From Mytilus edulis (Eukaryota): DNA of 64,000 nt. Positions 2,548 to 60,614 of this stretch are shown in pieces (position 1 is the first letter of the stretch; every line of letters begins with the position of its first letter). The translations under genes and the position numbers were made by a program. Below the pieces are notes generated by a model that was not told the origin of the DNA, did not search any database, and saw nothing but the letters and a program-made list of their open reading frames with translations. The DNA is taken from positions 89,652,001 to 89,716,000 of the forward strand of contig NC_092351.1 in the NCBI RefSeq assembly GCF_963676685.1, written 5' to 3'.

Positions 2548-2556
2548 AGTTTTTAA
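2548..2556 (+). CDS. 9-nt phase-2 microexon of TRIM-like paralogue, cassette A (x-V-F-K)
   Basis: ttttttttttctatttattatag|AGTTTTTAA|gtaagt; both flanking introns are homologous to those around exon 60606 of the B-box gene. Confidence 0.75.
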   Translation, partial: SF

Positions 2557-5500
2557 GTAAGTATACATTTTTATTTGTCTTTCGTTAGATATTCGTTATA
2601 TTTTTATATCTGAGTTAATCTAGTATCTGCATGTAACTAGGCCTGAAAAACCATTACTTTCACATAATGTTTTGGACATTATTTTCAGACTCGAAAAGGA
2701 TTACAGCGTTCTTCAATAATACTGTTCATGATATAATAATAAATAAATCGATACATGTACTACTGAAAAACATCTGGACCACGTAGTTTAACCCTTGCTC
2801 GTTATTCCATCATTCAATCATTCGACAACAAACTATATACGGAATGTTTCCTAAACGCATTAACAGACTGTTGGTCTTTTAGTATGTGAATCTAATATGA
2901 TAAACTACAGACTGATTAACATTGGATTCCGCTCCGCTGATTTTGGCAGAAATTAAACTCTAAACTTGGAAAATATCGTGAAAATAACATGTATATACGT
3001 TTGGTTCCTAAACGCATTTAAATATTTTGAGTTGATTTTTTCTCTGTGAGTCTATTGTGATGAGTTGCAGATAATATTTACATTATGTTCCATTCCTTTA
3101 ATTTTTTGCCGAAATCGTAGCTATGATTTGAGCTTAAACAAATTTGTTAAAATAACAGTTATTAAGACTATTTTGTAAAGGCCTACCCATATTGAGCTTG
3201 CAACAGTTTTTGAAAACGAGGCCATACATGTCATTCTGACACATCAATGTATTGGTTTTGTTACTCTTTGTTATCTGTAATTTAATGAGTTACACGGCAG
3301 GAATTCAAAATATTACTGAACACGTATTTAAAAAAGATTATCAATCCACGCAGTGTTAACATATAAAGACTAGTTTATTTTATCATGTTGATAGTTATGT
3401 CGTCCGCGCTATTAGCCTTATTTGAGAATGTTTGATTCCATTTCTTTGCCTTATAATAGTCTTTTTATTTATCCTACGATTACCAATGCAGTCACAATTC
3501 ATTTTGGATAACAACAATGATCTTTGCATTAGGTTTCCATCATAACAATAGTTGTTTAAACACATTACTGAATTGCCAGAACATACTTTTAGAATATAGC
3601 CAACATAAGACAAGAACCAATTTTAAATTTAACCAGATTTATTGTACAATTTTACCAGAAATATTATACATTTTTGTACAAATTGAAAAGCCACCTAGAC
3701 TGTTAAATGTCTGACTGTCCTATTCTTGTCTTTTCTTTGTTCGGATTTTTCTCCTAACTGTATCGAAATACAAACTGAATATTATTTAAGATTAGTTCAC
3801 AAAGAAATATGATGTTGTTCATAAATTCAAAGTGTCAATCAAACAACTCCAAAGAACTTCCATTAACACCAAGATATCAATGTCTGAATAATTATTGTGT
3901 CTGTATATATGGTTACTACTGAAATTTCTAGAAAACCATAGAAATTTAAATTTTGCACCGTAGATTATGATCGTTCTTGAATCATTATACAAGTCAAATA
4001 AAAGTTCTTATCATTCCATCAATGTCAATTATTGCTCCAGTGATTTGCTAACATTTTTTTGTAAACAAATTTAAATGATAAACAACCCATCATGTAGCAT
4101 ACAACTACCAAATTTAAGAAAGGCAAAACACATTACGCTTAATTGCATCAAATTTCAAATAAGACAACTATCCAACAGACACCAAATTGGATAAATGAGC
4201 AAATTCCTTAATGTGCTCATCATAATGAAGTTAGACAATTCAAAAGAGCAAAACAAAAACCATTAAAATTTACGAGTACATAATGATTACACGATGTGAT
4301 GTAAACCCCCTGTTTGAATTGTTGCTATGGTGGTGCTATACATTAATCCGTTGCTATACAAGTAAATATGTTGATGATGTGTGACTCCCAAAGATAGGTT
4401 TCTATATGTCTAAATCTTTATCACAACCAGGTTCAAAGTTCAACAAAGAAACAAAATAAAACCCCATTGTTTGATGCATGTGTACATCAAGATTATTTGT
4501 CACTAATTAATGATTTAGTATGGTCTTATTTGACTTGATGAATTCTGCATATAGTTGTTATTATTATTTTAATCACCACGCAATTTTTTACGTCTGTTTC
4601 ACAAGAAAGGTATTTTTGTGTACAATTTTACAATAAGTACAGTAGCAGTATAGATTTTTCGTTTTTCTGTTTATGCTTTTCAACTTCGTGTTAAAATAAG
4701 TCATGTCAATTGTTATTTGAGCTCCACTGGGCATGCGTATTACATTGACAATGAGTTTTGCAGTCCTGATATTATTATTAAGTTTTATCATGAATCACCA
4801 GGTAAAAAAATGAATACTCAACGAAATCTTTATTTTCTATAATTATGTCTGTTTTGCTATTTTTAAGACTTACTTTTTGGTTCTGAATTACTAGTATAAT
4901 TGTATCCAATAAACAGTGACGTAAGGTATATGTTCGTCTGAAAACAGCAACAAACAATCTGGGATCTGGGATTAACTTTTAAATCTTGTTCATGTTGGTT
5001 GTATCAGCACTACAACACTTGAACAGGTCCCTAACTGTGTCATACGGCCCGTCAAAATAAATTATAAGACAATCCAACAGAGCAAAAGCAATGGTTCTCT
5101 TTGCCTTATAAGTGTAACAGCTAAATATTAAAAATTACGAGTATATAGTGTTTAGATGATGTGATTTTAACCCCTGTTTTAAATACAAATATCAATTGTT
5201 GTAAGGTGGTATAATACATAAATGAGTCGCTTTCACTAAAATATGGTGATGCTGTGCGGCTCTCAAAGGTTTTATATATCTAAACCTGTATCACTTTCAG
5301 GTTCAAAATTCCACAACCGAACAAAATATAACGCCAATATTCGATTCATGTGTCTATCAACATTATTTGTCACCAATCAATGCTTTTGTGTGGTCATATT
5401 TGACTTGATGAATTCTGCATATAGTGGTTGGTATTATTTCAATCACCACAAGAGAGGTATTTTTGTGTACAATTCTACAATAAGTACAGTGACAGTACAG

Positions 5501-6434
5501 CCTTGCGGTCATATAACTTAATAATTCTTCTTTTTCTGTGTATGCTTTTCAACTTCGTGTTACAATAAGTCATGTCAATTGTTATTTGAGCTCCACTGGG
5601 CATGCGTAATACATTGACAAAGCATGTCTGGTATCTTTAATGAGTTGTGCAGTCCTGATATTATTATTATGTTTATCATGATTTTTCCGGTGAAATTTGA
5701 AAAATCAACGAAATCTTTATTTTCAATAATTCTGTCGGTTTTACTATCTATTAGACTTACTTTTTTAATTCTGAATTACTGGTATATTTATATCAATAAA
5801 CAGTGACGTAGGATATTTGTTTGTCTGACAACAGTAAGAACACATCATATCCATCAGGGTTTAACTTTTTCACGTTGTTCTTGTTGGTTTCATTAGAACT
5901 TCATCGTTTTACGAAATCTTTTTAAATACTTTTAAAATAATCCAGCATTACTGAAGCGCTATGAAATGTCGAAATGTTGAAATGGTACAAAATATTTTGT
6001 ATCATTAATGCTGTTAATACAAATGAGAAAAAAATGATAAAAAATACGTTGTTACAGGAACTAAGACTGCTTCAGATTAATGTTTATGTTTTATAGACAG
6101 AGGAATATCAGTCAGATAATATTTACATACTTTCATTATGTAATGTATCAGAAATCATACTATCAATTAGTAGTTAAAGATCAGAAAGTTTTTATTAAAT
6201 AAAAGTTTGAGGTTAATGAATTCCAATGGAAAAACTAACATGAATGTTATTGTAATGTACTTTAAAGTGTAATTAAAATAAAAAGATAGAAAGCCACAAG
6301 TCGTCTATTTGGAACCGAGTTTTAAATTCTGCTTTTTTTTTATATAAAGATCAAACATTGATAGTCTTCTTTATTAATATTTAGTTAGTCGTTAAGTTAT
6401 AAACTCATTTATTATCTCTTGTAATCTCTTACAG

Positions 6435-6446
6435 AATTGGAAGATT
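6435..6446 (+). CDS. 12-nt phase-2 microexon, cassette A (K-I-G-R-L)
   Basis: aatctcttacag|AATTGGAAGATT|gtaagt; open in phase 2. Confidence 0.75.
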
Positions 6447-8393: not shown

Positions 8394-8436
8394 GTATTAC
8401 TGACGAGATATTAAATGTCTAAATGTAGATCTGATA
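8394..8436 (+). ncRNA. Degenerate minimal type I hammerhead ribozyme relic in an intron
   Basis: gtatta-CTGACGA-gatat(taa)atgtc-TAAA-tgtagatc-tgatac: CUGANGA box, stem II and stem I can pair, but GAAA is mutated to TAAA. Paralogous copies near 5945 and 27635 retain cGAAAt. Confidence 0.45.
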
Positions 8437-8873: not shown

Positions 8874-8885
8874 AGGCAAATACAT
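8874..8885 (+). CDS. 12-nt phase-2 microexon, cassette A (L-G-K-Y-I)
   Basis: aatcttttacag|AGGCAAATACAT|gtaagt; lies in a tandem copy of the intron unit that carries exon 6435. Confidence 0.75.
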
Positions 8886-9358: not shown

Positions 9359-9363
<5 letters not shown>

Positions 9364-9471: not shown

Positions 9472-9489
9472 TGATTGTAAGAAATGTGG
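9472..9489 (+). CDS. 18-nt phase-2 microexon encoding the second CxxC knuckle (D-C-K-K-C-G), cassette A
   Basis: tttttcattttcag|TGATTGTAAGAAATGTGG|gtaagt; both Cys are conserved in the copy at 30851. Confidence 0.85.
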
Positions 9490-12276: not shown

Positions 12277-12313
12277 AAAGCGTGAGATTCATTTCTTGAT
12301 TGGCGAACTATAA
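12277..12313 (+). CDS. Terminal coding exon, cassette A (G-K-R-E-I-H-F-L-I-G-E-L-stop)
   Basis: attttactatttttag|A AAG CGT GAG ATT CAT TTC TTG ATT GGC GAA CTA TAA; same length, phase and IGEL* ending as the exon at 33255; several AATAAA downstream (for example ~12430, ~12793). Confidence 0.8.
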
Positions 12314-16035: not shown

Positions 16036-16311
16036 CTTTGATTTGTAAAGTTATATACCTGTATAGTAAATCAGCCATATTTTTTGTGTTTATAGGATTC
16101 AATGTACAATACAATGGACAGCAATATTGTAATACAATAACAACAAATTTTTGTTTGCATAAATTAAGGGTGACAGCATGAAGCGTGCGAGGAAATTTTG
16201 TTGAATTGAGTATTTGACGTTCTTATTTTTATATGTTTTTCTTCTTCAAATAACATTACATTTTTCCGTATCATTTCATTTTGTTCATGAATGTTTTTCT
16301 ATTTATTGTAG

Positions 16312-16320
16312 GAATTTAAA
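16312..16320 (+). CDS. 9-nt phase-2 microexon, cassette B (x-N-L-N/K)
   Basis: tttttctatttattgtag|GAATTTAAA|gtaagt. Confidence 0.7.
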
Positions 16321-17564
16321 GTAAGTATACATTTTTATTTGCCTTTCTTTAGATTTTCGTTGTATAATTATATCTGAGTTCATCGACTTGTAACTGAGTT
16401 TGAAAACCCATTGTTTTCACATAATGTTTTGAACCATAATTTTCAGACTCGGAAAGGATTACAGTGTTCCTCAATAATACTGTTCATGTTATAATCATAA
16501 ATAAATCGATACATGTACTACTGAAAAACATTGTGATCACGTAGATTTATCCTTGTTCTATTATGAGATACAAATTGAGTTCACGTTAGGTTCCGCTCCG
16601 CTGATTTTGGCCGAAATTATGCACTTATGAATTTTCGTGAAAATAACATGTATAAACACTTTGTTCCTGAACGCATTTAAATATTTTGAGTTGAAATCTT
16701 TTTAGAAATCACTGGAATTAAACCTCGACAAATCCAAGTTACAACAGTTATAAAGACCTTTTCGTGAAAACCTTCTAATAATGAGCCCGCAACCGTTTTT
16801 GAAAACGGGACCATAATTAAGTGTCTGACACCACATCTTGGTTTTGTTTTTGTTTCATTTTGCTCTTTGTCATCAACATTTTGATGAGTTACAAGACAGG
16901 AGTACCAAGTGGAACTGGAGTACCTATCTTAGAAACCGTAATCAATCCATGCAGTGTTGACGTGTGAAGGATAGTTTATTTTATCATGTGATGGTTATTT
17001 CTACAAAGATATTTACTGCATTTTGACATTGTTTGATTTCATTGCTTTGTCTTATAATTGTTCTTTTATTTAACCAACGATTGCCAATGCCGTCACAAGT
17101 TGTTTTTGATAACAACATTGCCTATTGCACAATGTTTCCATCCTCATAACCATAGGTGTCGAAACACATTACAATATTGCCAGAATTCCCCTTTAGATTA
17201 CAACCAACAGTTGACAAGAACCAAAGATGGATTTAACCAGATTATTATTTTTTCAAAAACAAATAACGCTTTGTTCGTTTCAATACCGAATGCTTGACCA
17301 GGTGTTATTTTCTCATATTAACTTTTAAGAATGAACCTTGTACAGTGTATGTCATAAACATTTTGCAAGGAACAATCAGAAACTATAGAACACATACTGT
17401 TGGTTGTTTGTCATATTCATGATATTGTAGTAGAAATCACTGTTTGAATTTATGAAGCAACACATATTGATATTCCAATAAATATTGATATTGTAATTTT
17501 TGGCCTATATGAAAACTTTTATCTATACCAGTCATTTCACTGGCAAAGTACATATCAAAGATGC

Positions 17565-17802
17565 AACAGATCCTGCTCCCCATGTGGCACCTGACATGTT
17601 GCTTATGTGATAACAAATCCGGCCAATAGTCTAATTCGGTAGGTCACATTCATGAAAGGGAAGGGGATTGTAGTTACGACGAAAGGAACATATCCGATAT
17701 CATTTGTGAAACGTTTTTCCATATCGGTCAACCAACTCGTGATGGCGTCCGTAAAATTTACGAAGGGATCATTTCAATTTCACCATTTGGAACTCTTGGT
17801 TT
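17565..17802 (-). mobile_element. Penelope-like element 3' fragment
   Basis: Reverse complement matches pieces of 58185-58340 (gtgacctaccgaatt, gatatcggatatgtt, tacggacgccatcacgagttg); related copies at about 35100-35500 and 36220-36630. Confidence 0.6.
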
Positions 17803-19444
17803 AAACGAGGCGTCATTTGTTCATATTATGTCAAAGAAAATGAGAGCAAAAAGGCTCTTCCAATCACTGAGAATAGTTTTATTGCCGACGTTGCACTGGC
17901 ATATATTAATTTGATGACATTATCGTAAATTTCTCTAAATAAACATTCGATATATGCATTGCATCCTTTGTCATAACCGCGTGAACTACTGAATTAAGAA
18001 GGGTATTTTGCTAATTTGCATAACGGCCATTTTGTGCTATCATAACGGCAGCCATTACATTATCATTATATATGCCTCTAAATTAAAAATGCCAATATGC
18101 CAATTTGTATCAACAATTTGTCTGGGTACAGATTTTTAGGGTTCCGTTCGTGTTCAAAAGATCATTGACTACAGCAACTTTGAAAACTTTCAGCCTTTTA
18201 AGTTTTAAAAATCGGAAGCGTAACCAACTGATAATTGCTATATAAAATAGCTAAAAATCGTCGAAACGCAAGGTTCAGAACAGAAATCAAGATACAAAAA
18301 TATATTGATATTGCCAAAACCAAAGCTATGAATTGAGCTTTAATAAATTCGTCATAACAGTTATTAAAACTATTTTTTATAGTCCTTCACATATTGAGCT
18401 TGCAATCGTTTTTGAAAACGAGGCCATACATGTCATTCTGACACATCAATGAATTGTTTTTGCTACCCTTTGTCATCTGTAATTTAATGAGTTACACGGT
18501 AGGAATACAAAGTAGAGCTGAAAACATATTTAAGAAACTAGTATAAATCCACGCAGTGTTAACATGTAAGGACCAGTTTATTTAATCATGTTGATAGTTA
18601 TGTCTCCAGCGCTATTGGCTGTATTTTGACTTTTTGTGATTCCATTGCTTTGCCTTATAATTATGTTTTTTTTTATCCTACGATTACCAATGCAGTCACA
18701 TTTTTTTGTTGGATAACAACAATGACCTTTGCATCAGGTTTCCATCATAACAATAGTCATAAATAACTTTTAGATTATAGCCAACAATGAAAAAGAACCA
18801 ATGATAAATTTTAACCTGGTTTATTTTACAATTTTACCAGAAATAGTATACAAATTGAAATGCCACCTAGACTGTTAAATGTCTTTTCTTTGTCCGGATT
18901 TTTCTCCTAACTGTTTCGAAAATCAAACCGAATATTATTTAAGATTAGTTCACAAAGTAATATGATGTTGTTCATAAATTCAAACTATGAATACAACAAC
19001 TCCAACGAACATCTATAAACACCAAGATATCCATGTCTGAATAACTTTTGTGTCTGTATATCTGGTTACTACTGAAACCTTTACAAATGTTTTAGAACAC
19101 AGTAAAAATTTTGATTTCGAACCGTTGATTATGGTCGAGTTTGTAACCATTCCATCAATTTCAATGATTGATCTAGTGATTTGATAACATCTTATGTGAA
19201 CAAGTATAAATGTTAGACAGCCCAATCATGAAAAATTGTATTGGGCCGCATACAACAAATTAGGGTAAGATAAATTTACACTGATTTGTAAACATTTCTT
19301 GTAAACAAATATAAATGGTGAACAACCCAATAATGTAACGTCTGTCTGGGCCATGCACAACACATTAGGTCAAGATGATTAACGTGAAAATTACAATATC
19401 ATAACACTAACAAATTCAAAAAAGATTAATTAATTGTTAGTTGC

Positions 19445-19965
19445 TGTATGAAGATAATTCGTCAAAGGCTGTAACTTTTTATTGTAAATGATGTTTCAAC
19501 CTAAAAATACACAATATGACAATATTCAACTAACACACAAGTCATAAGTTTGATATGTTGACATCGCGATTGATAACCGTTAATAGACACAATAAGCAGT
19601 TCAAACATTTGTTCAATAATAATGTGCATATCACTTACGCATTGACGGCCTATATCATATCAATCATTAGCTAATAACTTGTAGGTTTTCCAGAATGAAC
19701 AAAGAAGTTCAAAAACCATTTCAGTGTTAAATCGAGTAAGGGGAAAGAAACGAGTCTGTATACAGTACTTTCTGCTCATGATAATACCTCCATAATTTGG
19801 AGCACCACTTCTTTAACGTATAATGTACTTTATCACATAAACAATTCAGGATAAGTCCGTCATAAAATCAATACTAATATCGGAAAAGTTATCAGATTAA
19901 AATAATCGCCATACAATCCAAAATTAATTATCAATCAAAGTTATAATGTTTATCAATCCGATACA
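19445..19965 (-). repeat. 3' LTR of the BEL/Pao element
   Basis: Direct repeat of 25547-26067; I see 2 mismatches. Confidence 0.97.
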
Positions 19966-20008
19966 TTCCCCGCCATAAAGTTTGTGTGAAATTAACTCTC
20001 ATTTGTTA

Positions 20009-23000
20009 CTAACATTGTTCTTCAACTGGAAGCAACACTACAATTATGTGTGCAGATCTTCGGATCAATAAGTCCTGAGTTCCGGTGTATTTAGTTCCCG
20101 GTCCAATGTTCTTGTATCGAACGGTTACATCCCTTGTCACACCATCTCTACTTGAGTTTGCTTCAACTATTTGTCCTAATTTCCAATTACTACGAAACGA
20201 ATTGTTGTCCTGCACAAGAACAAAGTCCAAACTTGAAGGTTCCGTTTACTCACATGCCATTTCTGCCTAATAATTAACGATGGAAAATAATCTCTGTGCC
20301 ATTTTCTCCAAAATGTATTAACTACTTGTTGCACGAATTTCCAACGTTTTTTGAAATTGTCTGATTCATCCCAATGTCCTACTGGCACATTCGAAGATGC
20401 TCTTCCGAGAATAAGATCATTCGGACATAAATATGTTCCCTCGTTCGGATCAGACGTTGAAGTTCCTATAGGTCGCTCATTCAAAATGTTGGCTACTTCA
20501 AGTAACACGGTTTGTAGTTCAGAAAATGTCATGATTGATTGTCCAATGGCAAGACTCAAACTTTTCTTGACGGATTTAATCAATGCTTCACTGCATCCAT
20601 TTTCCCAAGGAGCATCAGCTGCTTTTGTAAATTCCCATTCCATGCCGTTACCGTTCCCAAACATTTTGATCGTATCCCAATGCCAACTTTTTACTACTTC
20701 CTTTAGTTCCTTACTAGCTGATACTAGTTGTGATCCAAGATCCGACCTTATCTTCTTAGGATATCCTCTAATAGATGTAAATCGTCGTAATACCATTATG
20801 AAACTACTAGTATCGTATCCATCAGCAAGATCTACATATACAGCTCTACTGCTCATGCAGTTGAACAACACTCCATAAGCTTTTCCACGAGTGCGCCCCT
20901 TAACGGTATCCTTAATTGTAAGAGGTCCGAAGAGGTCTACTGAACAGTACGAAAACGCTGGTGACGGTTGAAGTCGTTCCAAAGGTAATGGTCCCATTTG
21001 TTGTCCAATACATTTGTTTTCTCGTCTTCGACATATAATGCATTTTTTCCTAATCATAGAAATGTATTTGCGCACCTTTGGAATCCAGAATCTGGATCTC
21101 ACTTTAGCCAATGTTACGTCTACTCCTGCGTGATCCTGATCATGTACTGACTTTAAGTATAACCACACATAATGCCCTTTATTAGGTAATAGCATTAAAT
21201 CAGTTCTGTTCCAAGTGGCTTTCAGCCAATCAGCTAATCTTTTACCAACAACAACTATACCCGCGTCATTCTTTTCTGGAGATAGTCTTCGAAATGTTTT
21301 TATCCAATTATCCGAAATGTCTCTTTGTAAATATCTAATCCATTCAAATTCTGCAGCATTTAGACTTTCGGCAGTTACACCCATTGATGCACCTTTGAAT
21401 GATTTTGTAGTGGCGATTCGCATCAGTATGCATGTTACTCGCAAAAGTTTTGAATATGATGAAATGTTTTCCAGTTTAACATCTTCGAAATTTAAACCAG
21501 ACATTGTATCATTCATCTTCTTGATATCAGATGACATAACAATACCTATCGTGTCGGGTAGCTTGTCATTACCTAAATTACAATCTTGCCTTAAAGGCCA
21601 CTGGTCTATTGGATCATTTAAAAATTTAGGTCCATTTTTCCATATTGAGTTCTTAACTAAATCATTAGGAGATGTAATCCTTGTTGCGAGGTCCGCTCCA
21701 TTGAATTCACTTGGTACGCACCACCAATCGGACGGTTCAGTCTTATTTTGAATTTCTGCTACTCTTGTAGCAACAAATGTGCCGAATCCATAACTCTCTC
21801 GTTGAATTTGTGCCCTAACAATCATTGAATCGACTATGTGTATAACTCGACTAAATTTATAATCCATCTCCTCTACTAACTTTTGTCTAATCCTAGCTGC
21901 CAATACAGCTCCACATAATTCCAGTCTAGGAACAGACATCTGTTTAGTTGGTGCTATACGGTTTTTTGCTATCACTAACCGTGATTCAAATCCCGCTTGA
22001 TCTGTTCCCCATCTGACATATGCACATGTTCCATAAGCTAATTTACTTCCATCCGAAAATATGACTAGCATGGGATCCCCAACAGCATTATTTGGCTTTA
22101 AACATCTGTGAAATTTCAACTGTTCTATGTCGAAAAGCTCTTTGAAAAAATCCATCCATTCTAACCGTGATTCTGCTGACATGGCATAATCCCATCGAGA
22201 ATTGTGTAAAGTCTTGTCATTTGTATTGTTTTCTATGCATAGCTTTCGCATTAGAACCTTAGCTGCTAAAGTATACGGAGTAGCAAGTCCTAACGGATCA
22301 TATACACTAGCAACTTGACTGAGTACCATTCGAGGAGTTAATGACGTAGGTACGCTACTTTCAATCTGTGACTTCGTTATATTTTCTCCTTTCCGAACAT
22401 TCTTGTACTTAGGAGAAAAATTAATCTTCACCTTGAAATCGAACAAGTCTTGTTTTGGATCCCACCTCATTCCGAGAATTTTCTCATGCGCAAATTCATC
22501 TAAATCAACCTCCACGGATTCACCACTAACTGGGGATTGTAGATTACTGCCGCATTTTTCATTCCCAGATATAATCCAATGTTTAATGCGAAAACCTCCA
22601 CATGCCAGCATTTTCTCGGTCTGCTGGGTTATCAAACGAGCATTATCTACACTTTCAACTGACTGTAATATATCATCTACATAACTATTTCTTATCACCA
22701 TTTTTGATGCATCTGGGTAGATGTGTTGATACATTTGTGCTGTTTGATGTAATGCAAGCGTCGAAATAGCTCCACTCGGTCTGTCGCCAAAAGTAACTGT
22801 CAACAATGCATAGTGATCTGGATCTCTGTGTGTTTCTAAATTTCTCCACACAAATCGGTGTGTGTGTGCTGATCTAACGGTGAAAGTCTTATCGCATTGT
22901 ACATTTTTGAAATGTCACCAGCCAAAGCTGTAGATTCTTGTCTGAAACGAATTAAGACCGCTAACAAATCATTGATCACATTGGACCCTTTCGCCCAATA

Positions 23001-25529
23001 GTCATTCAGAGTGTGTCCCATATAAGATGATGAGGAGTTAAATACGATTCTTAATGGTGTCGATTTTGATTCGGGTTTTAATACCTCATGATGTGGTATG
23101 TAATGTATCGGACCGTTATGTCTCATCATTTCCTCCTTGGTCAATTTCCTTGCTATGCCACGTTTCACCATATCCATAATCTGTTCATCGTAGGCACTTG
23201 CATATTTTAATGAATTTCGGAGTAGTCGTTTTTCGGTAGATCCAAGTCTTGATACGGCTGAATTCACGTTATTTGGTAGGTTGTTTGGATTTTTTATCCA
23301 GGGGTAATTTACTATCCATTGCTGTGATTCTTCATCATGTATCATGCCTGATTTAATGATATTTAATTCCCTCTCCTCTCTTAAACTATGTTGCGATTGT
23401 CCCACAGCACATTTGCCACACTTACATGAACCACATTTTAATGTGGTTTGTTTCCCTGGCCCTTCTATGTCAAAAAGAGAATCTAGTTTGTCTTTAATAC
23501 TGTCTCTGTCCAATACATGAATATCATTTAACGGAATGATTTTTCCAGATGCCCAGTAAATACGGACTATGCCATGGTTTGACAATTTTGGCACTTCTAG
23601 ATGAGGATGACTGCCACGAATGCAGTACCCAAACTGATTTTTCATTAACTGTAGATTTCCAATTTGTTCTTCTTTATTAGGCATTAAAATACAACAATCT
23701 GTGCCGATCAATATGTCTACTTGGCAAGTTGGTCTTTGTATATCATTCTTGTTGATACCTTTGAACAGTTGTTCGACTCTACTCATATCAACTCTTGCAA
23801 CCTCGGCCGTAACTTCCTCCATGCCATATGCTTTTATTGTCCATATCTTACCTCCAAGGTCAGTCAACGGTATTACATACTCTTTGCTTTGTACATGTTC
23901 GGTTACATTTCCAACCTTTGTCACAGATAATGTTATATCTTGTCCAGATAATCCTAATCGTTTAGCAGTTTTGTGTGTGATCAGTGACATGTTTGCTCCA
24001 GGGTCCCAAAGTGTTGTCAAAGACATGTCCTTACACTGAACTGAACTGATCATCAATAGTACCCCATTCTTGTTCTTGTCATCGTTTATCACCTGTGTAG
24101 AGTTATGAAAGGATATGCCATCCATGTGTGCAGTGTGCAAATTTTTGTGATGAATTTTCCCACATGGTTGATGAAGTTCATTTTGTATGTCACAAGGTTT
24201 ACGGCTGTGACAATGTCTTGACAAATGTCCTATCTTTAGACAACTGAAACATCCACCATTTTTTCTCACTAAATCAACCTTTGTCTGACTATCTAATCTC
24301 GCAAATATAGAACAATCACCTATTTCATGATTATCTGATTTGTGATACCAACATTTAAACTTCCCTTCTGTATTTCTATTTGTACCGGCATATTTGTCTG
24401 CATTGTATCGACTTGTTGGTTTGTTTGACATTGCTTGAGCTACCTGTGCAAGACCTTCAACAACCTGTTTCATCACTTGTTGGTTCTCTTGTAATTGTAC
24501 TTGTAAGGGATCTACAGCTACATCATTATTATTTTCGTCATTTTCGGATTCATTTGCATCCAAAGTATTGATCTTTCCTTTTGCTGTTCCATATTCACGC
24601 AAATCAGACTCCATGTACTCAAGAGCACTTTTTTCCTCTAACAAAAAATTTAAGAACTCTTTGAAACTCAGGGGAATACTTTTCAATTCTGTCTTTTGTT
24701 TTCGCAATGCCCATTCACGTTTTTGTATAGGGGGTAGGAGTTTTTCTATCTGACTCACCATAGTTGCTGTGTTCATCTCGGATTCGAGGTTCATACGTTT
24801 TAAATCAAGCCAACATTTCTCGACAGTTTCTACTACCGAAATAAACTTCATGTTGTCACCTTCTTGAACTTTCTTTAATCTTTTTAATTCATTTAATATG
24901 TGATCAATCAATTGCTCTGCTCTGCCATATTTCATATCAAGACGCCGAAACATTTCCTCGAAATCATTGTCAACACCTTTCACAACAGTTAAGGCTTCAC
25001 CACTTAAACATTGCTTCAGAGCATAAGGATCTTTACCGTATGACGATATCATGTGTCTTTCATAATCAACTTTGAAACTTGGATAATCACGAATACTGCC
25101 AGCAAAAATAGGAGCCTCTAATTTTTTCACCCTAAACGTTTCAGTATCTTTATTTTTCTTAGCATGCTTCATGGAGTTTTGTTCTATTAACTTACTGTCT
25201 TGTTCATGCTTTATCTTCTGTCTTATATTCTCACACAATGATCTTGATTTACAAAGTTCTCGGTACATACCAGTTAAATCATGATTATATTCGTTTATCT
25301 TTGGTTTGTCTTCTTCATTTTCAGAATCAAATGTTTCTAAAAATACCTCATGTCTTGCTTCTAGTTCTGTGTAAGCTGTTTCCAAATCTTGAAGTATTTT
25401 GTCAACCACAATTATCCCAGACTCATCCTGTATTCCTTCTAGTAAGCGACCATATATTCTATGAAATCTCCCTTTGGCCGTACTTCTTTTCTTCTTTGTT
25501 ACTCTTTTGTGATCGGCATCAACAGACAT
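20009..25529 (-). pseudogene. BEL/Pao gag-pol polyprotein with two frameshifts (about 22860 and about 20230)
   Basis: Gag Zn knuckles (CFSCLKIGHLSRHC), protease LWDPGA, RT (LRIVFNSS, GDISKMY, YVDD), Pao-type RNase H (FSDGS, PRLELC), integrase (HDQDHAG..CIIC, DLFGP, SDLGSQ, PWENG), C-terminal WKLG..V..RDV.V. Confidence 0.95.
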
Positions 25530-25546
25530 CTTGCCTTGCGTTGAAA

Positions 25547-26067
25547 TGTATGAAGATAATTCGTCAAAGGCTGTAACTTTTTATTGTAAATGATGTTTCA
25601 ACCTAAAAATACACAATATGACAATATTCAACTAACACACAAGTCATAAGTTTGATATGTTGACATCGCGATTGATAACCGTTAATAGACACAATAAGCA
25701 GTTCAAACATTTGTTCAATAATAATGTGCATATCACTTACGCATTGACGGCCTATATCATATCAATCATTAGCTAATAACTTGTAGGTTTTCCAGAATGA
25801 ACAAAGAAGTTCAAAAACCATTTCAGTGTTAAATCGAGTAAGGGGAAAGAAACGAGTCTGTATACAGTACTTTCTGCTCATGATAATACCTCCATAATTT
25901 GGAGCACCACTTCTTTAACGTATAATGTACTTTATCACATAAACAATTCAGGATAAATCCGTCATAAAATCAATACTAATATCGGAAAAGTTATCAGATT
26001 AAAATAATCGCCATACAATCCAAAATTAATTATCAATCAAAGTTATAATGTTTATCGATCCGATACA
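25547..26067 (-). repeat. 5' LTR of the BEL/Pao element
   Basis: Direct repeat of 19445-19965. Confidence 0.97.
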
Positions 26068-28092
26068 GTTGCTTCATGTAGCATAAGTACAGAAATGCTA
26101 TATCGCGGCGATTTTGAAAAAAACAAAACACATGAAGCTTAATTGCATCAAATGTCCGGGGAAAAAAAACGTCGAGAGTGCTTAATGTAAGGATATTCAA
26201 TATAACAATGTGGTATGATTAACAATTGGACAACTATCCACCAGATACCTAATTAAGTAAATGAGCAAATCCCTTACTGTGTAATTCGGCCCGTCATAAC
26301 AAATTATAACACAATTCAAAAGAGCAGAACCAAGGGTCATCTTTGCCGTATAAGTGTTTCAGCCTTACCTTACAATTAACGAGTATATGGTGTTTCCATC
26401 ATGTGATTTGAACTTACTGCTTTAAATACAAACATCAGATGGTGTTTGTTATACATTAATCAGTCGCTTTCTTTAAATTATGTTGATGACGTTCGACTCT
26501 CAAACATAGGTTTATATATGTCTTAATCTTTATCAAACTCAGGTTCAAAGTTCAACATACAACGGAACAAAATAAAAAGCCATTATTTGATGCATGAGTA
26601 CATCAAAATTGTTTTCCACTGGGCATGCGTAATACATTTACAAAGCATGTCTGGTATCTTTAATGAGATTTGCAGTCCTGATATTATTACTAAGCTTTAT
26701 CATGAATTACCAGGTAAAAAATTGAATAACTCAACGAAATCTTCATTTTCAATAATTATGTCTGTTTTGCTATTGTAAAGTCTTATTTTTCGGTTCTGAA
26801 TTACTGGTATATTTGTATCAAATAAACGTTGACGTAAGGGTTTTGTTCGTCTGACAACAGTAACAACACATCATGTCAATCTGGGATTAACTTTTAAAGC
26901 TCGTTCTTGTTGGTTTTATCAGCACTCCAACACTTGAACAGATCCCTTAATTTGTAATAAGACCCGTCAAAACAAATTATAACACAATCCAACAGAGCAA
27001 AACCAATGGTTCTCTTTGCCTTATAAGTGTAACAGCTTAACATTAAAAATTACGAGTATATGGTGTTTAAATGATGTGATTTTACCCCTGTTTTAACTAC
27101 AAATATGAATTGTTGTAAAGTGGTACGATACATTAATGAGTCGCTTTCACTAAAATATGTTGAAGCTGTGCGACTCCCAAAGAAAGGTTCTATACATCTA
27201 AACCTGTATCACTTTCAGGTTCAAAGTTCAACAACCGAACAAAATGAAACGCCAATATTCGATTCATGTGTCCATCAAAATTATTTGTCACTAAGAATTG
27301 CTTTTATGTGGTCTTATTTGACTTGATGAATTCTGCATAAAGTGGTTGGTATTAACCTAAGTTTATCATGATTTTCCCGTTGAAATTTGAAAAATCAACG
27401 AAATCTTTTTTTTTAATAATTATGTCGGTTTTACTCTTTCTTAGTCTTACTTTTTAATTCTGAACTACTGGTATATTTCTATCAATACACAGTGACGTAG
27501 GATATTTGTTTGTCTGACAACATTCATAACAAATCATATCCATCTAGGTTTAACTTTTACACATTGTTCTTGTTGGTTTCATCAGCATTTCAACGGTTTA
27601 CGAAATGTTTTTAAATTCTTTTAAAATAATCCAGCATTACTGAAGCGTTATTAAATGTCGAAATGTTGAAATGATGCAAAATATTTTGTACCAATAATGC
27701 TGTTAATACAAATGAGAAAAAAAATGATAAAATTTCCGTTGCGATAAGAACTATGACTGCTTCAGATTAAAGTTGTTGGTTTATAGACAGAGGAATATCA
27801 GATAATATTTACATACTTTTATTATGTAATGTATCAGAAATCTAACTATCAATTAGTAGTTAAAGATCAGAAAGTTTTTATCAAATAAAAGTTTAACGTT
27901 AATGAATTCTCATGGAAAAAAAAGTGTAATGCAAATAAAAAGATAGAAAACCATAAGTCGTCTATTTGGAACCGAGTTTTAATTTCTGCTTTTTTTTATA
28001 TTAAAATCTAAGATTGATAGTCTTATTTCTAAATAGTGAGTTAATTCGTTAAATTATAAACTCATTAAAATATCTCTTAAAATCTTTAACAA

Positions 28093-28104
28093 AGGTCGAG
28101 GATT
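28093..28104 (+). pseudogene. Decayed 12-nt microexon, cassette B (acceptor AG changed to AA)
   Basis: aatctttaacaa|AGGTCGAGGATT|gtaagt; positional counterpart of exon 6435. Confidence 0.7.
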
Positions 28105-30140
28105 GTAAGTATTGTAATGGTATGACATATATATTTATAATAAGTATTTGCATTCCATGTTATGTCTTGGATTTTTTCTAAGGCTCGTGTTCTTTCTCTA
28201 AACGGCATTTACACTAAAGGGCATACCAACAACTAATGTTATATATTCGTCAGTATTAGATTTTAGGCTTACAAACTCTTAGAACTATTTTGAAATATTG
28301 AAACCAACAATGATTATATTTTGTTATAAGAAAACTGTGTGATTTACTTCTTTCGTAAGTACATACATAAACATAACATCAATGTGCTTGGTAAATGAAA
28401 GCAAAAGTGGTTCACAAATCTTTTTAGATTTCTTAGATCATTGAAGCACCAAAACAAGATAACAAACAAAAATGAAAGAATTGTAAAATAGATGTCATTG
28501 ATTTTTCCCTTCAACTTAATCAGAAAATAATTATGATTCATGTTATGTCGTGGACCTTTTTTCGGAATCCAAACGGAATATTATCTAAAATTAGTTTACA
28601 AACTAGAAAGCTTTTGTTTATAATTTGAAAGTGTCAATCCAACAACTCCAGAGAACTTCTAAGAATACGAATACATCCATGTTTGAATAATGTTTGTGTC
28701 TGCATATATGGTTACTACTGAAACTTCTAGAACACCGTAGAAGTTTGAATTTCTTACCGTAGATTGTGATAGTTTTTGAAACATTTTGCAAGTCAAATAC
28801 AAGGTTCTGAACATTCCATCCGTATCAACGATTGATCAACTGATTTGTAAATAGTTTGTGTAAACAAATATGAATAATGAACAATCCAATCAAGTAAATA
28901 ACTTATTGGACCACATACAACAAATTAGGTGAAGATAAATTACAATTACAATGTCATAACACTACCAAATTTCAGGAAGGCAAAACGCATGACGCTTAAC
29001 TGCATCAAATTTTCAATTGAAAAAGAGAACAATCGATGAGAGTGATTAATACAAATTTTAGATAAAACAACGTGGTATGATTGACAATTGGACAACTGTC
29101 CACAAGATATCAGACTAAGTAAATGCATACAACTATAGGTCAATGAGCAATGTTTACATGATATGATTTTAACACTTGTTTGAAAAACAAACATCAAATG
29201 TTGCTAAGGTTGTGCAGTACACTAATTAGTATTTTTCACTTAAATCTGTTGATGATGTGCGACTCTCAAAAATAGGTTTCTATATGTCTAAATCTTTATC
29301 ACACTCAGGTTCAAAGTTCAACATACAAACAAAATAAATCGCCATTAATCGATTCATGTGTCCATCAACATTATTTGTCACTAATCAATGCTTTTGTGTG
29401 ATCTCATTCGACTTGATCAATTTTGCATTTAGTGGTTTGTTTTCTTTGAATCACCACACTTTGTTTCACCTCTGTGTAACAAGAAAAGGTATTTTCATTA
29501 CAATTCTGCAATAAATACAGTCACAGGACAGCCTTGTGGCCATATATCTTAATGATTCTTTTTTTTTCTGTTTATGCTTTTCAACTTTGTGTTAAAATAA
29601 GTCATGTAAATTGTTATTTGAGCTCCACGTGCTCCACTTGGCATGCGTAACAAATTGATGAAGTACGTCGGGTATCTTTGATGAGTTTTGCAGTCCTGAT
29701 ATTATTATTAAGTGTTATCGTGATTTACCAGGCAACAATTTGAATACTTAACGAAATCTTCTTTTCAATAATTCTGTTTTTGGTTCTGAATTACTGGTAT
29801 ATTTGTATCAAATAAACAGTGACGGATGGTAAATGTCGAAATGTAGATCAAGTGCAGTAAATACAAATGAGACAAAATAAATAAAATTTCCGTTGTGATA
29901 GTTACTAAGACTGCTTCAGATTAAAATGTATGGTTTATAGACAGCGGAATACTAGATATTATGTACATATTTTTCATTATCTAGTGTATCAGAAATCTAA
30001 CAATCAATTAGCAATGAAAAATTCAGAAAGTTTTTAGTAAACAAAAGTTAAAGTTAATAGACTGGTCCTTCTTCTTTTTTAATATAGAGTTTATTCGTTA
30101 AATTATAAACTCATTTATTATGTCTTATTATCTTCTAAAG

Positions 30141-30152
30141 AGGTCAATACAT
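30141..30152 (+). pseudogene. Decayed 12-nt microexon, cassette B (donor GT changed to GA)
   Basis: tcttctaaag|AGGTCAATACAT|gaaagt; counterpart of exon 8874. Confidence 0.7.
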
Positions 30153-30395
30153 GAAAGTTTTGTTATGGTATGACATATATTTATAATAAGTATTTGCATT
30201 TCATGTTATGTCTTGGACCTTTCTAACGCCCGTGGCCTTCCTCTAAACGGCATTTACACTAAAGGGCATACGAACAACTTATGTTATATATTCGTCAGTA
30301 ATAGATTTTAGGGCATACCATCAACTTGTGTTAATAAAATATTTCAGGCTGACAAACAGTTTGAACTATTTTGAAATATTGAAACAAACAATGAT

Positions 30396-30460
30396 AAAAT
30401 TGAGAATGGAAATGGGGAATGTGTCAAAGAGACAACAACCCGACCATAGAGCAGACAACA
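30396..30460 (+). mobile_element. Short dispersed repeat (aaattgagaatggaaatggggaatgtgtcaaagagacaacaacccgacc)
   Basis: Same motif at about 59477 and 32857; absent from the paralogous intron near 9088, so it is an insertion. Confidence 0.7.
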
Positions 30461-30850
30461 TGACAAATGATACTTATTTGTTTTAACAAAACTGTTTTAT
30501 TTACGTCTTTTGTAGAATATCAAACATATTGGCCTTTTGAATAATAGCAAATTTGTTCATCAATCTTAATTTTTTTAGATCATTGAAGCACCAAATGAAA
30601 ATAGCAAGCAAAATATATAACTTAATCAGTGAATAATAAACATATAATAGTAGATTCAGGAAACACAAAATATTTGTTTGAAATGCTGATGTTTTCTTCC
30701 TTTGGTGTCTTTCATCAAACCGTTATATATATATATACATATTTGTATCTTGCAATATAGTTTGCTTTTAAAAGACACAAAAAACATTGCACATGTATAT
30801 TAGTATCAGTGCAGTATACTTATATGAGTTAATCATTTTTTCATTTTCAG

Positions 30851-30868
30851 TGATTGTGAGACTTGTGG
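30851..30868 (+). CDS. 18-nt phase-2 microexon (D-C-E-T-C-G), cassette B
   Basis: ttttttcattttcag|TGATTGTGAGACTTGTGG|gtaagt. Confidence 0.8.
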
Positions 30869-52046: not shown

Positions 52047-52813
52047 ATGACACAGGCTGCGTACAAAACGTGTGAGATATGTGTATCTAGTCCTGGACAT
52101 AACTATTGCGAAGAGTGCGACCAGCTGTTTTGTGATGGATGTAAAATATCTCACTTACGGACAAAAATGAGCAAAGACCATACATTTCTAAGTGGCCCAA
52201 ATATAAACCCAGGAGTTAAACAATATTGTAAAGAACACGATGAAACATTTATATATTACTGCATGGAATGTAATTCGCCGATATGCAAAATATGTGTAAT
52301 TAAAAAACACAAATCACATGACTTTGCTGAAATCAAGGAAACAACTGACGGAATCAAAGCTGAGGTCAAAAAGGGGATGGACATGAAGATGGAACACCTG
52401 CAGTCAAAGATAGCAGATATTGAACAAAGTTCAAACAAATACCAAACTGATGTTAACGGAGTCATTCACGCTATCAGGGAAGAAGGGAAACACTTAAAAG
52501 AGCTGATTGATAAGAAGGTCGAAATTCTGGTTAAATCTGTGAAAGAGGAAGAAACAAAGAATTTACAAATTTTACAGTCCAATAAAAATGAGATTAAAGC
52601 AGCTTTGAATAAGGCAAAGGAGCAGCAGAAGTTCTATCAAGACTCACAGGGTATAAAAGATTCTACGAAATTGATACAAAAGCTAAAACAAATTAAGTCA
52701 CAAATCGACAAAAAAGAAGAAATACAGATTCCTATTATGCCATCAGTCAAATATGTTAGACAGAAAGTAGCAGAGTGTGAAATAGAAAAACTGTTTGGGG
52801 AATTAAGATTTGG
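52047..52813 (+). CDS. RING-less TRIM-like protein, coding exon 1: B-box1, B-box2, coiled coil
   Basis: CEIC..CEECDQLFCDGC..H..H (B-box1), CKEH..CMECNSPICKIC..HKSH (B-box2), long K/E-rich heptads; ends FGELRF-GG|gtaaat (phase-2 donor). Confidence 0.93.
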
Positions 52814-53926: not shown

Positions 53927-53974
53927 AGAAACTGTCAAAAAAGAAGAAAACCCGGAACCGCAGGAGAGCGTCAG
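53927..53974 (+). CDS. TRIM-like exon, 48 nt, phase 2-2 (G-ETVKKEENPEPQESV-R)
   Basis: ttatttttttctcag|AGAAAC...GTCAG|gtttgt; purine-rich, open in frame with exon 1. Confidence 0.8.
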
Positions 53975-55396: not shown

Positions 55397-55450
55397 AGTT
55401 GGAACAACAGTTACTAGTAAACAATACAGATACAGATGCCTAAGATGCAA
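55397..55450 (+). CDS. TRIM-like exon, 54 nt, phase 2-2, first CxxC (R-VGTTVTSKQYRYRCLRC-K)
   Basis: attttatag|AGTTGG...TGCAA|gtaagt; open in frame. Confidence 0.8.
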
Positions 55451-56018: not shown

Positions 56019-56036
56019 GACAAATACAACTTCTGA
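56019..56036 (+). CDS. TRIM-like microexon, 18 nt (K-TNTTS-E)
   Basis: tcttcatttcag|GACAAATACAACTTCTGA|gtaagt. Confidence 0.8.
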   Translation, partial: DKYNF

Positions 56037-56427
56037 GTAAGTACCTCTATTCAAATTAATTAACGAAAAATATTCTGAAAAAGTCTGTCTTATAGAATGT
56101 TACATATTCATTTTTACACACTAATATTATCAAAAAACAGCCCGTACGAATATATTTGAGTAATTTACATGAACACAAATATATTCATCATATCTTATAG
56201 GGGAAATGTTGCTGATAAACACAACAGATTTGCAGTTAAATGAGTCATATGACCGACCGATTATAGATCACAAGTAATAGTTTATCATTTATAACAATCC
56301 ATCTTACTGATAGTTGATTTATGTAAGTGGCAAAAACTGTAGCCTATTTATTAACTGTTGTTCAATATGTATAAATATTTCACAATAGTATGCACTTTAT
56401 CTTACAATTATATTGATTCATTTACAG

Positions 56428-56442
56428 ACAATCACCTATTCA
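56428..56442 (+). CDS. TRIM-like microexon, 15 nt (E-QSPI-Q)
   Basis: ttcatttacag|ACAATCACCTATTCA|gtaagt. Confidence 0.8.
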
Positions 56443-58345: not shown

Positions 58346-58351
58346 GACATG

Positions 58352-59332
58352 TTTTTACGACCGCAAACATTAGAAATTTTTTGGTCATATATTGGTATGA
58401 CGTTGCGTCGTAGCGTCGTCGTCGTTGTTGTTGTCGTCGTCGTCGTCGTCGTCGTTGTCGACGTCTTGGTTTGGATTGATTTTGGAAGTTTTGGTACCAA
58501 CAGTTTAGGAATTAGGGGCAAAAAAAGGACCAACACAAGCATTTTTTTTAGTTTTTGCACAATAACTTTAGTATGAGTAAATAGAAATCTATGAAATTTA
58601 AACACAAGGAGTATGACGACAAAAGGAAGGTTGGGATAGATTTTGGGAGTTTAGGTCTCAACAATTTAGGAAAAAGGTCAAAAGGGTCTAAAATTGAATT
58701 ATTGAGGTTTTGATATGCCAAATGCAACCGTGTATTTAGATTCTTAATTTTGGTGCTGTTTTCAGATTGGTCAACATTAAGGTCCAAAGGATCCAACATT
58801 AAACTTAGTTTGATTTTAACAAAAATTGAATTCTTGGGTTTCTTTGATATGCTGAATCTATACATGTACTTGGATTTTGAATTATGGTCCAGTTTTCAAG
58901 TTGGTCAAAATCGGGGTCCAAAATTAAAATTGTTTGATTTCAACAAAATCAATATTTGGGGTTCTGCAATATGCTGAATCTAACCATATATTCAGATTTT
59001 TAATATTTGAGCCCGGTTTATAAAATTAATCCATATTGAGGTCAAAAGGGTCCAAAATTGAACATTATTTTATTTCATCAAAAATTGAATTCTTGGGGTT
59101 CTTTGACATGCTGAAAATAACCATGTATTTAGATTTTGGATATTGGGATATCGACCATAATAGGTAAATGTCCAATTTAAAATTTTTAAGTTAAGAAACC
59201 GATGTTGTGTCAACTATTTAATCACAATCCGAATTCAGAGCTGTATCAAGCTTGAATGTTGTGTCCATACATGCCCCAACTGTTCAGGGTTCGACCTCTG
59301 CGGTCGTATAAAGCTGCGACCTGCGGAACATC
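58352..59332 (+). mobile_element. Helentron-associated (HINE/DINE-1-like) non-autonomous element
   Basis: Sub-terminal inverted repeats tacgaccgca (58356-58365) and tgcggtcgta (59299-59308), a (GTC/GTT)n microsatellite near the 5' end, internal degenerate repeats, a 3' GC-rich hairpin and T-rich flanks. Confidence 0.75.
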
Positions 59333-60605
59333 TTTTTTGTCATAATTCAGTAAACCGCTGATTTTGGTTTGTTAAGTCTAAGTATATTCGTTAAGCTGTG
59401 CTATATATTTTTCATTTATTTGTTTTGTCTATTCTTTTTATTTTTGTAACTTATTGTCCTAGTCTTTAATATCATAAATTGAGAATGGAAATGGGGAATG
59501 TGTCAAAGAGACAACAACCCGACCAAATAAAAGAACAACAGCATAGGGTCACCAACAGGTCTTCAATGTAGCGAGAAATTCCCGCAGAAATGTCAATTCT
59601 CACATCATTGTTGAATGATACATTTTTTATTTGAATGGTATGATGAACAACGTAAAATTGAGAGCTGTGGTTGTATCGAAAATATCGAAATTCAACCTGT
59701 TATTGGTTTCGAGGTTTACAAGGAAATACTTCGTGTTGAACTTCGGATTTCGAAAATAATAAAACAGAACGGCCCATATCATACCCCTATAGTCATGTAA
59801 GTGACGAGGTGTCTAACCTTAATTGTTTCCGTAGATCACCACTCCACTTTTTTAATTTGCTTAAGATATTTTTGCCATACAACTAAAGCCGTTATTCAAC
59901 CATTCAATAAAACAAATAATTTAATAGAATCTCTGTAATGTCAGGATACATAATGTGTTGTGGTAATCATGGTAACATAAGTATACAAATGGAATAACAC
60001 TAACGGGATCAGTATAACTTTGATGAACCTTAACAATACAAAATTGATAAACAAGTATTGTAACATTACAGATCCAAAGTACTTTGCTCATCAAATCGCA
60101 AGAACTGTAAAGTTTAAACCAATTATATATGTTATATAAAGGTGTAATCGTTTGCCAAATTATGATGTTAGGACAATTATTTAAAAAAATAAACGAAAAT
60201 TTATTATGCTGTAGTTGTACCTTGTAGTTAAAAGTAACGCATGATCTCTCGTTATTTCAGTTTTGGTACTCTGGATTAACATGATCCAGGAACTGAATAC
60301 CATTTCTAAAAGGTCAATCTATTTCAGTCGAATGTTCTTGACGACAAAAATGAGTATCGTTATCACACGTAAATGAAACAGGCGAGGAATTTTTGTTGAA
60401 TATATTGTTCGAATATACTTTGCCGTTCTTACATGGTTTGTTTGAATCGGTTAATTTTGAATTTTTTAATGTTTTTTTTTTTTTTTTTTTTTTTTTTAAT
60501 GTTACATAACTGTATTTGCATTTCTATATACATTTTAATAATTGTTTGATAACGATAGTTAATGTTAAATAAAATTAAATGCCAATGTCTTTCTATTTTT
60601 TATAG

Positions 60606-60614
60606 GTATACTCC
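60606..60614 (+). CDS. TRIM-like microexon, 9 nt (Q-Y-T-P); the gene continues beyond the window
   Basis: tctttctatttttatag|GTATACTCC|gtaagt; flanks homologous to those of exon 2548. Confidence 0.75.

Follow-up and report, generated by a model that had tools for sequence, protein, structure and literature searches.

Where does the protein of a mussel B-box gene end when its only long open reading frame (ORF) closes after 256 amino acids (aa) on what looks like an unspliced donor? The question is raised by a 64,000-nucleotide (nt) stretch of Mytilus edulis DNA (C8:89652001-89716000 of the 1.37-Gb Mytilus assembly that was searched; hereafter the window), in which the sole long ORF outside transposons lies at 52047-52817. 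A preliminary description made from the sequence alone had proposed that this ORF is the first exon of a TRIM-like gene whose C-terminus is assembled from symmetric microexons. Our analysis points the same way: with a probability that we put at roughly 0.7, the gene belongs to a Mytilus-specific, RING-less TRIM-like tandem family in which a chain of symmetric phase-2 microexons encodes a linker and a tail of two knuckles and a variable loop. The mRNA would run from the 256-codon first exon through a series of symmetric phase-2 exons, those of 9-18 nt encoding the whole loop between two CxxC(G) knuckles. Loop exons would multiply, shrink or vanish as 2-3 kb intron-exon units are duplicated or decay, leaving paralogues that differ in loop length and sequence.

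Three genes have to be told apart: gene D is the gene of the window, gene U its nearest upstream paralogue and gene E the next downstream copy. The sequence analysed was the window with 10 kb upstream and 30 kb downstream (104 kb); positions above 64000 or negative are window-equivalent coordinates and lie outside the window. Features are collected in Table 1.

Splicing of the microexon chain

Exon 1 of D has its last base at 52813 and GT comes next, which makes the intron phase 2. Behind it lie exons of 48, 54, 18, 15, 9, 12 and 18 nt, then the terminal exon, all phase 2-2. Every acceptor in D and U is a pyrimidine tract with YAG, and every donor is GTAAGT bar those of exon 1 (GTAAAT) and exon 2 (GTTTGT). 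With the junction codons of both genes derived exon by exon, D spells (G)ETVKKEENPEPQESV (R)VGTTVTSKQYRYRCLRC (K)TNTTS (E)QSPI (Q)YT (P)YRE (F)YCKKC (G)..., that is, QYRYRC-LR-C, a 20-residue loop and YC-KK-CG. The symmetric phase 2-2 microexons with canonical sites that had been described before were all found in place, and the peptide read from them, ...QYRYRCLRC(K) TNTTS(E) QSPI(Q) YT(P), reads the same here. The second knuckle had been supplied by joining exons across paralogues; this is unnecessary because D has 12-nt, 18-nt and terminal exons of its own at 65.5-67.2 kb, just outside the window.

What carries the argument is RNA. Runs that contain D exon 1 were found, and four RNA runs were compared with 52700-58699. 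In run X1 one 274-nt contig, at depth 22, joins exons 2, 3, 4, 5 and 6, the 12-nt exon (B) and the 18-nt exon (C) in that order. It matches the genome at 53926-53972 and at 55395-55451 (the exon-3 piece, with 0 mismatches), with a GT..AG joint from 53972 to 55395 (cut +2). It bridges 55451 and 56428 with ACAAATACAACTTCTGA, 17 letters that equal exon 4. It re-enters the genome at 56428, in exon 5, and leaves it at 56445, after which it reads TACTCC, GTATCGTGAATT and TTATTGTAAAAA: the remainder of exon 6, the 12-nt exon in full and the first part of the 18-nt exon. Exons 4, 6 and B are letter-perfect, as are 12 letters of exon C, and both B and C had been predicted from paralogue homology before the RNA comparison. 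The introns of D show zero RNA depth outside repeats. The contig confirms that the microexon chain of D is spliced as predicted, with nothing between exons 6, B and C; spliced transcripts over the predicted junctions, the test that the preliminary description had proposed, are thus in hand from exon 2 through the start of the 18-nt exon.

A second contig has a joint from 52813 to 55418, leading to exon 3 of a near-identical relative, and so skips the 48-nt exon 2; the same skipping is present in RefSeq ('isoform X2', P0201). Elsewhere in the D introns, 54300-54900 and 58500-58700 have very high RNA depth in all four runs. Nearly all of these reads fit only partly and continue into unrelated letters; they are repeat fragments transcribed elsewhere, not D exons. 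The 'A' intron repeat (4824-5020, 5543-5932 and 7972-8365; in D 64578-64978) was tried as a further source of exons: it holds no conserved AG...GT exon, and it was rejected because the RNA contig joins the 9-nt exon straight to the 12-nt exon.

A tandem family with truncated gene models

A six-frame search returned more than 150 genome-wide matches to the B-box exon of D. More than 15 B-box exons with 69-95% identity stand in tandem, mostly on the same strand, at C8 88.67-89.74 Mb, an array of about 1 Mb. Among them, at C8:88.868 Mb, is a 95% twin of D with the very same 9-, 12- and 18-nt exons. The B-box exon of U lies 5.6-6.4 kb ahead of the window start, and the first ~12 kb of the window are therefore expected to hold the 3' exons of U; gene E lies 25.6 kb beyond the window end. 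The window holds the complete 5' part of D and the 3' part of U, two genes that are collinear with 67-85% identity in blocks. The exons at 2548-12313 had been taken earlier for the 3' end of an upstream paralogue, and cassette homology, the collinearity of D and U, and the U B-box exon 5.6 kb upstream bear this out. The homology between 59340-62190 and 1920-3935 on which that proposal drew is real but patchy, consisting of four blocks of 71-81% identity; the cassette is also found at 275-1109 and 16290-18980.

By homology, U has exons of 48, 48, 18, 12, 9, 12, 12 and 18 nt ahead of its terminal exon, and it spells ...QYRCKCRKC (G)TEMTS (E)EKP (I)VF (K)IGR (L)GKY (I)DCKKC (G)KREIHFLIGEL and a stop. 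A conserved stretch of ~400 nt follows this stop, to ~12700, and is probably the 3' untranslated region.

Public gene models break off before this point. Close RefSeq relatives, 256-311 aa long, come from M. edulis, M. galloprovincialis, M. trossulus, M. californianus and M. coruscus. After ...LFGELTFG their tails read ETVKKEENPKPQKNVR, VTTTAKQYRYRCxxCx, TEI[IT]SE and EAPSI..., exons 2-4 being common to the RefSeq tails of the five species. P0165 (the nearest RefSeq model to D), P0181 and P0202 consist of the 256-aa exon alone. Each RefSeq Mytilus model found stops one residue after an exon block, by donor read-through, and none reaches the second knuckle. The ends are staggered because read-through of a phase-2 NN/GTAAGT donor gives NNG TAA, a stop one residue on; an unspliced donor yields such an in-frame stop in all introns of D and U except intron 2 (in D intron 1 through GTAAAT). 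Exons of 9-18 nt are dropped by short-read aligners and gene finders, and the models are truncated at whichever microexon the annotation pipeline lost. The expectation that gene finders would call just a 256-aa ORF was right in that every RefSeq Mytilus model found misses the tail, but exons 2-4 are often called.

The second knuckle is present in P0216, an RNA-assembled protein (Logan) with 51% identity to D; it is 336 aa long and comes from a contig of 1362 nt. Its tail reads ...TLYEYECDDCG KKPIDD VYG CEGQ GNYF DCETCG DTMWFRLIEEE, a layout of 18+9+12+12+18 nt and an 11-codon end, which is the U layout minus one exon. The terminal exon of U matches the end DTMWFRLIEEE in length and pattern. 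When the P0216 tail was compared by tblastn with genomic locus K (the nearest one, 75% identical to P0216), the hits were mostly chance ones of 4 residues, and exons 2-3 alone matched directly.

Variation of the loop among paralogues

The second-knuckle exon has a signature that can be followed through the genome: CAG-N4-TGY-N6-TGY-GG-GTAAGT occurs 17 times in the 1.37 Gb, always at C8 85.9-89.75 Mb (reversed-pattern control, 0), and the 18-nt xCxxCG exons sit on their gene's strand wherever strands were compared. The Cys codons are invariant in these 17 exons, as the search pattern itself required. The same C8 cluster holds 16 nine-nt and 14 twelve-nt cassettes whose fixed flanks carry 0-1 mismatch; hardly any two agree in content, and 30/30 are open in phase 2.

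The number and size of the loop exons vary as well: they are 18+15+9+12 nt in D, 18+12+9+12+12 in U, 18+9+12+12 in P0216 and 18+9+18 in locus K, a distant subfamily (42-47% identical to D in exon 1) that has exons of 48-18-9-18-18 nt in the same phase. From first to second CxxC, D has C-LR-C, 20 residues and C-KK-C; U has C-RK-C, 23 residues and C-KK-C; and P0216 has C-DD-C, 19 residues and C-ET-C. In U a 12-nt exon unit is duplicated together with the adjacent intron repeat, and comparison of the copies indicates that modules arise and decay by duplication of such units of 2-3 kb.

Over 24 RefSeq tails, the two residues inside the first CxxC have entropies of 3.5 and 3.1 bits and the next residue 2.5, and all other positions of exons 2-3 have 0-1.4 bits. 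Between genomic copies the 9- and 12-nt exons are 32/71 identical (45%) versus ~74% for 60-nt intron flanks; all microexons are 62% identical versus 72-76% for flanks (Fisher p = 0.002, from non-independent pairs and small counts, uncorrected for phylogeny). Exons that outpace introns while frame and splice sites are kept would fit selection for diversity, and the pattern is suggestive of it.

Architecture of the protein and nature of the tail

Within the 256-aa ORF, Pfam finds zf-B_box (E = 9.8e-14, residues 59-95) and ANCHR-like_BBOX (E = 5e-8, residues 9-46); these B-box models are the only ones it gives for the exon, and no RING finger was found. The open frame begins 8 residues ahead of the first B-box, and the homologues all start MAQAA at the same Met. 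TRIM_CC is below threshold in relatives (Pfam, E = 0.002-0.09), and a single-sequence AlphaFold model of P0216 has one long helix, 93-204, with a predicted local distance difference test (pLDDT) score of 70-84. The family is RING-less and TRIM-like, with B-box1, B-box2 and a predicted coiled coil. Strictly speaking, the missing RING excludes it from the TRIMs; RefSeq labels its members TRIM9-, TRIM33-, TRIM45- or TRIM71-like.

The tail can be written as a mini-domain of ~45 residues: [KQ]-Y-R-Y-R-C-x2-C-x, a loop of 19-23 residues, and [DY]-C-K-K-C-G-x(10). Kept across subfamilies are the two CxxC(G) knuckles ~20 residues apart and the aromatic residues before the first. From this spacing the tail is probably a two-knuckle zinc-ribbon or rubredoxin-like module that binds zinc. 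The pattern given earlier, CxxC-loop-CxxC-x5-H, stands as CxxC, loop and CxxCG; its His, which D and U have, is replaced by Trp in P0216 and so probably does not serve as a zinc ligand.

A sister subfamily (P0207, P0209 and P0010) shares both the B-box/coiled-coil exon and exon 2 (ETVKREETPKQQENVR) but carries, in place of the microexon chain, a UBZ-type Zn-C2H2_12 'autophagy receptor zinc finger' (E = 1.1e-6), a hint that small zinc-finger binding modules may be swapped at the tail position. Metagenome and Logan contigs hold a 30%-identical B-box/coiled-coil protein (P0151-P0164, 281-322 aa, apparently intron-free) with the tail RYELWVCQMCN, 17 residues, CCYGYMCKRG; this is possibly the same architecture in a distant form without introns.

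Alternative explanations

Several results weigh against the reading set out above, some of them touching D as an individual gene and others the tail. It is possible, though less likely than not, that D is a decaying copy whose apparent transcripts come from its intact 95% twin or from another individual's orthologue, D itself adding little or no functional protein. The X1 contig cannot tell D from the twin. It may stem from the twin, an allele or an orthologue, because the twin's exons 6, B and C are identical and the exon-2 piece has 4 mismatches in 47 nt. The junction between exons 1 and 2 of D is represented only by a loose end at 52813 that bears a relative's exon 2. Two deep raw-read RNA runs, X21 and X24, have zero reads on D exons, which shows D to be silent in those samples and no more, and the nearest RefSeq model is the 256-aa P0165. 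The terminal exon, outside the window, also departs from the family pattern: after (G)MDSVH an interspersed repeat is inserted (window-equivalent 67182-67262) that replaces the family's usual C-terminal residues, the reading continues as ...QMDNNYHNPELVQTFL, and the in-frame TAA comes earlier than in U. Decay is common in this region, as an orphan tail fragment and a dead cassette elsewhere in the window show. Against all this, none of the eight D exons through the second knuckle is damaged: their splice sites are perfect and the frame stays open, and the RNA contig shows zero mismatches in exon 3 and is exact over exons 4 and 6, the 12-nt exon and 12 letters of the 18-nt exon. Decay of D would in any case touch one copy and leave the family-level finding unaffected.

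Less probable still is that the chain is spliced but that it encodes only a flexible and for the most part disordered linker or a peptide motif, its Cys pairs forming disulfides or having no structural role and its change reflecting relaxed constraint. Profile searches and structure prediction give this some room. The tail has no Pfam family at E <= 1, and the ribosomal protein L33, to which the tail had been likened, is absent from the Pfam matches of P0216, P0151 and P0007 at that threshold. A homologue search with the P0216 tail alone returned P0216 itself only, and the ESM Atlas look-alikes, all unnamed clusters, score 0.88, which is too low to count. The single-sequence AlphaFold model of P0216 has a mean pLDDT of 48, with ~30 in the tail, which is uninformative, and a hairpin at 320-331 is predicted without confidence. 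The zinc-ribbon fold proposed in the preliminary description was thus recovered neither by profile search nor by structure prediction, and because of the missing Pfam match, the Atlas value of 0.88 and the tail pLDDT of ~30, zinc binding and fold are read from the Cys spacing. Exons 2 and 4-5 are also rich in K, E, P, T and S, typical of disorder, and D tolerates a repeat insertion in its last exon. Even so, subfamilies whose B-box exons are just 42-51% identical have retained the four Cys, the aromatics before the first knuckle and the Gly that follows each CxxC, and all 30 listed 9- and 12-nt cassettes are multiples of 3 with the frame open. The loop exons are more divergent than neutral-looking introns, which is not expected from relaxed constraint alone, and disulfides are unlikely in a protein without a signal peptide.

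A strict scan of the 104 kb (YAG after >=70% pyrimidines, exon of 6-60 nt, GTAAGT donor) returned 11 candidates for the gene strand against 2 for the opposite one; 10/11 are multiples of 3 and 9/10 are open in phase 2. These hits fall in ~3 cassette types and are not independent, which makes the RNA contig the decisive evidence. That the short AG...GT segments are chance matches in duplicated intronic repeats or transposable elements, and that the gene ends at the exon-1 stop, is very improbable: cassette flanks are repeated several times in the window, the region is partly interspersed repeats and 9-12 nt between AG and GT are common by chance, but the RNA contig has the exons in order without introns and refutes this for the D chain, the cassettes occur only in the family cluster and on the gene strand (18-nt exon control 0; strand asymmetry 11 to 2), and P0216 shows the same layout.

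What remains to be weighed is how far the loop is variable and to what end. Alternative use of loop microexons was not seen, with one contig covering the loop exons, and the second-knuckle exon encodes mostly DCKKCG, so that it is conserved and not variable. The hypervariable loop of the preliminary description therefore survives in part: the loop exons (45% versus ~74% for introns) and the first knuckle (3.5 and 3.1 bits) speak for it, suggestively only, and the second knuckle does not. Under the microexon-tail reading that we prefer, the tail would bind zinc and fold around its knuckles, and a coiled-coil dimer would present it as a variable binding surface where other TRIMs have SPRY or NHL. 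A bolder extension, which we regard as tentative and on balance doubtful, is that the loop between the knuckles, together with the tip of the first one, serves as the germline-diversified recognition surface of an intracellular sensor family. Its specificities would come from duplication, resizing and loss of microexon units and from fast change of 9-12 nt, with the introns and their splicing signals conserved. Regulated intron retention could add to this, since unspliced donors give stops: retained introns could yield a graded series of tail-truncated isoforms.

Other features of the window

Remnants of further tails lie among the U exons and beyond them. At 275-667 there is a dead 9-nt cassette: homology begins exactly at the donor GTAAGTATAC, and the exon and its acceptor are gone. 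The orphan tail fragment looks like the remnant of a lost paralogue, judged from its homology to family tails. It has a 9-nt cassette at 16312-16320, a degenerate 12-nt cassette near 28090 (the acceptor AG is now AA) and an intact-looking 18-nt DCETCG exon at 30851-30868. It is split by a BEL/Pao long terminal repeat (LTR) retrotransposon with a GC content of 38%, against ~30% around it, whose two ORFs overlap by 16 nt in different frames. The 897-aa ORF has DUF1759 and DUF1758 (gag and protease-like), and the 891-aa ORF has Peptidase_A17 (E = 1.4e-44), an integrase zinc-binding domain and DUF5641. An interspersed repeat of ~150 nt with the pseudo-ORF motif NNC.IPDLVQAF occurs at 32247-32400, 33024-33161 (-), 34518-34676, 61083-61251, 62568-62699 and 63570-63725 (-), and the insert in the D terminal exon is a further copy of it.

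Table 1. Exons of genes U and D and other features, in window or window-equivalent coordinates.
Feature	Position	Strand	Remarks
U exon 1 end	about -5593	+	B-box exon
U exon 2	about -3650 to -3603	+	48 nt
U exon 3	about -2842 to -2795	+	48 nt
U exon 4	-1250 to -1233	+	18 nt
U exon 5	-251 to -240	+	12 nt
U 9-nt exon	2548..2556	+	(I)VF; cassette alignment and strict scan; by homology only
U first 12-nt exon	6435..6446	+	(K)IGR; homologous to D's RNA-confirmed 12-nt exon
U second 12-nt exon	8874..8885	+	(L)GKY; duplicated intron-exon unit; candidate, by homology
U 18-nt exon	9472..9489	+	(I)DCKKC(G); second knuckle
U terminal coding exon	12277..12313	+	37 nt; (G)KREIHFLIGEL, then stop
Orphan tail fragment	16290..32400	+	without B-box exon and terminal exon; family tail homology
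BEL/Pao LTR retrotransposon	20176-25529	-	two long ORFs; splits orphan tail fragment
D exon 1	52047..52813	+	two B-boxes, predicted coiled coil; 255 aa + 2 bases; donor GG/GTAAAT, phase 2
D exon 2	53927..53974	+	48 nt; (G)ETVKKEENPEPQESV; donor GTTTGT; matches RefSeq tails ETVKKEENPKPQKNVR
D exon 3	55397..55450	+	54 nt; (R)VGTTVTSKQYRYRCLRC; first CxxC knuckle; first located by motif
D exon 4	56019..56036	+	18 nt; (K)TNTTS; RefSeq counterpart TEIISE
D exon 5	56428..56442	+	15 nt; (E)QSPI; U homologue 12 nt
D exon 6	60606..60614	+	9 nt; (Q)YT
D exon B	65548-65559 (window-equivalent, past end)	+	12 nt; (P)YRE
D exon C	66274-66291 (window-equivalent, past end)	+	18 nt; (F)YCKKC; second knuckle
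D terminal exon	from 67166 (window-equivalent, past end)	+	acceptor homologous to U's; by homology

Significance and comparison with known systems

The real C-terminus of the family is invisible in all RefSeq Mytilus models found, and dozens of mussel genes may need re-annotation; '256-aa B-box only' proteins in bivalve catalogues may likewise be truncated models. No description of this tail was found in the literature on Mytilus microexons and B-box genes. Mussel B-box/TRIM-like expansions are large and lineage-specific and are thought to serve innate immunity. The tail described here raises the hypothesis of a binding surface diversified through microexon turnover, and it would be a rare case, outside parasitic flatworms, of a microexon-encoded, paralogue-variable loop in an intracellular protein.

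Three known systems invite comparison. First, the family resembles TRIM proteins in its B-box1-like and B-box2 domains followed by a long predicted coiled coil, in having a variable C-terminal module at the TRIM ligand-binding position and in its large lineage-specific tandem expansion; lineage-specific expansions of B-box genes have been reported in bivalves (PMC8382680). It differs in lacking RING, SPRY, NHL, filamin and COS domains and in having instead a microexon-encoded module of ~45 residues with two CxxC pairs. Second, two CxxC(G) knuckles ~20 residues apart, with aromatics before the first, recall zinc ribbons and rubredoxin, and such knuckle spacing falls within the zinc-ribbon range; the tail differs from these in having no sequence-model match and no confident structural model.

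Third, a parallel in gene structure may be drawn with the micro-exon genes (MEGs) of schistosomes, in which microexons make up to 75% of the coding sequence, most products have a signal peptide and are secreted (PMC4015677), and exon skipping is documented (DeMarco et al. 2010, as summarised in PMC4015677). Both are gene families with runs of tiny symmetric exons between ordinary exons, where exons can be gained or lost without frameshift; here five consecutive exons of 18, 15, 9, 12 and 18 nt, all phase 2-2, are spliced in RNA. The mussel family differs in that its 9-18 nt microexons amount to ~8% of the protein (72 of ~1005 coding nt; ~24% with exons 2-3) and that its product is of intracellular type, beginning with a B-box and without a signal peptide. 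The variation, moreover, lies between paralogues, with skipping seen only for the 48-nt exon 2, and the microexons are set between two conserved Cys knuckles.

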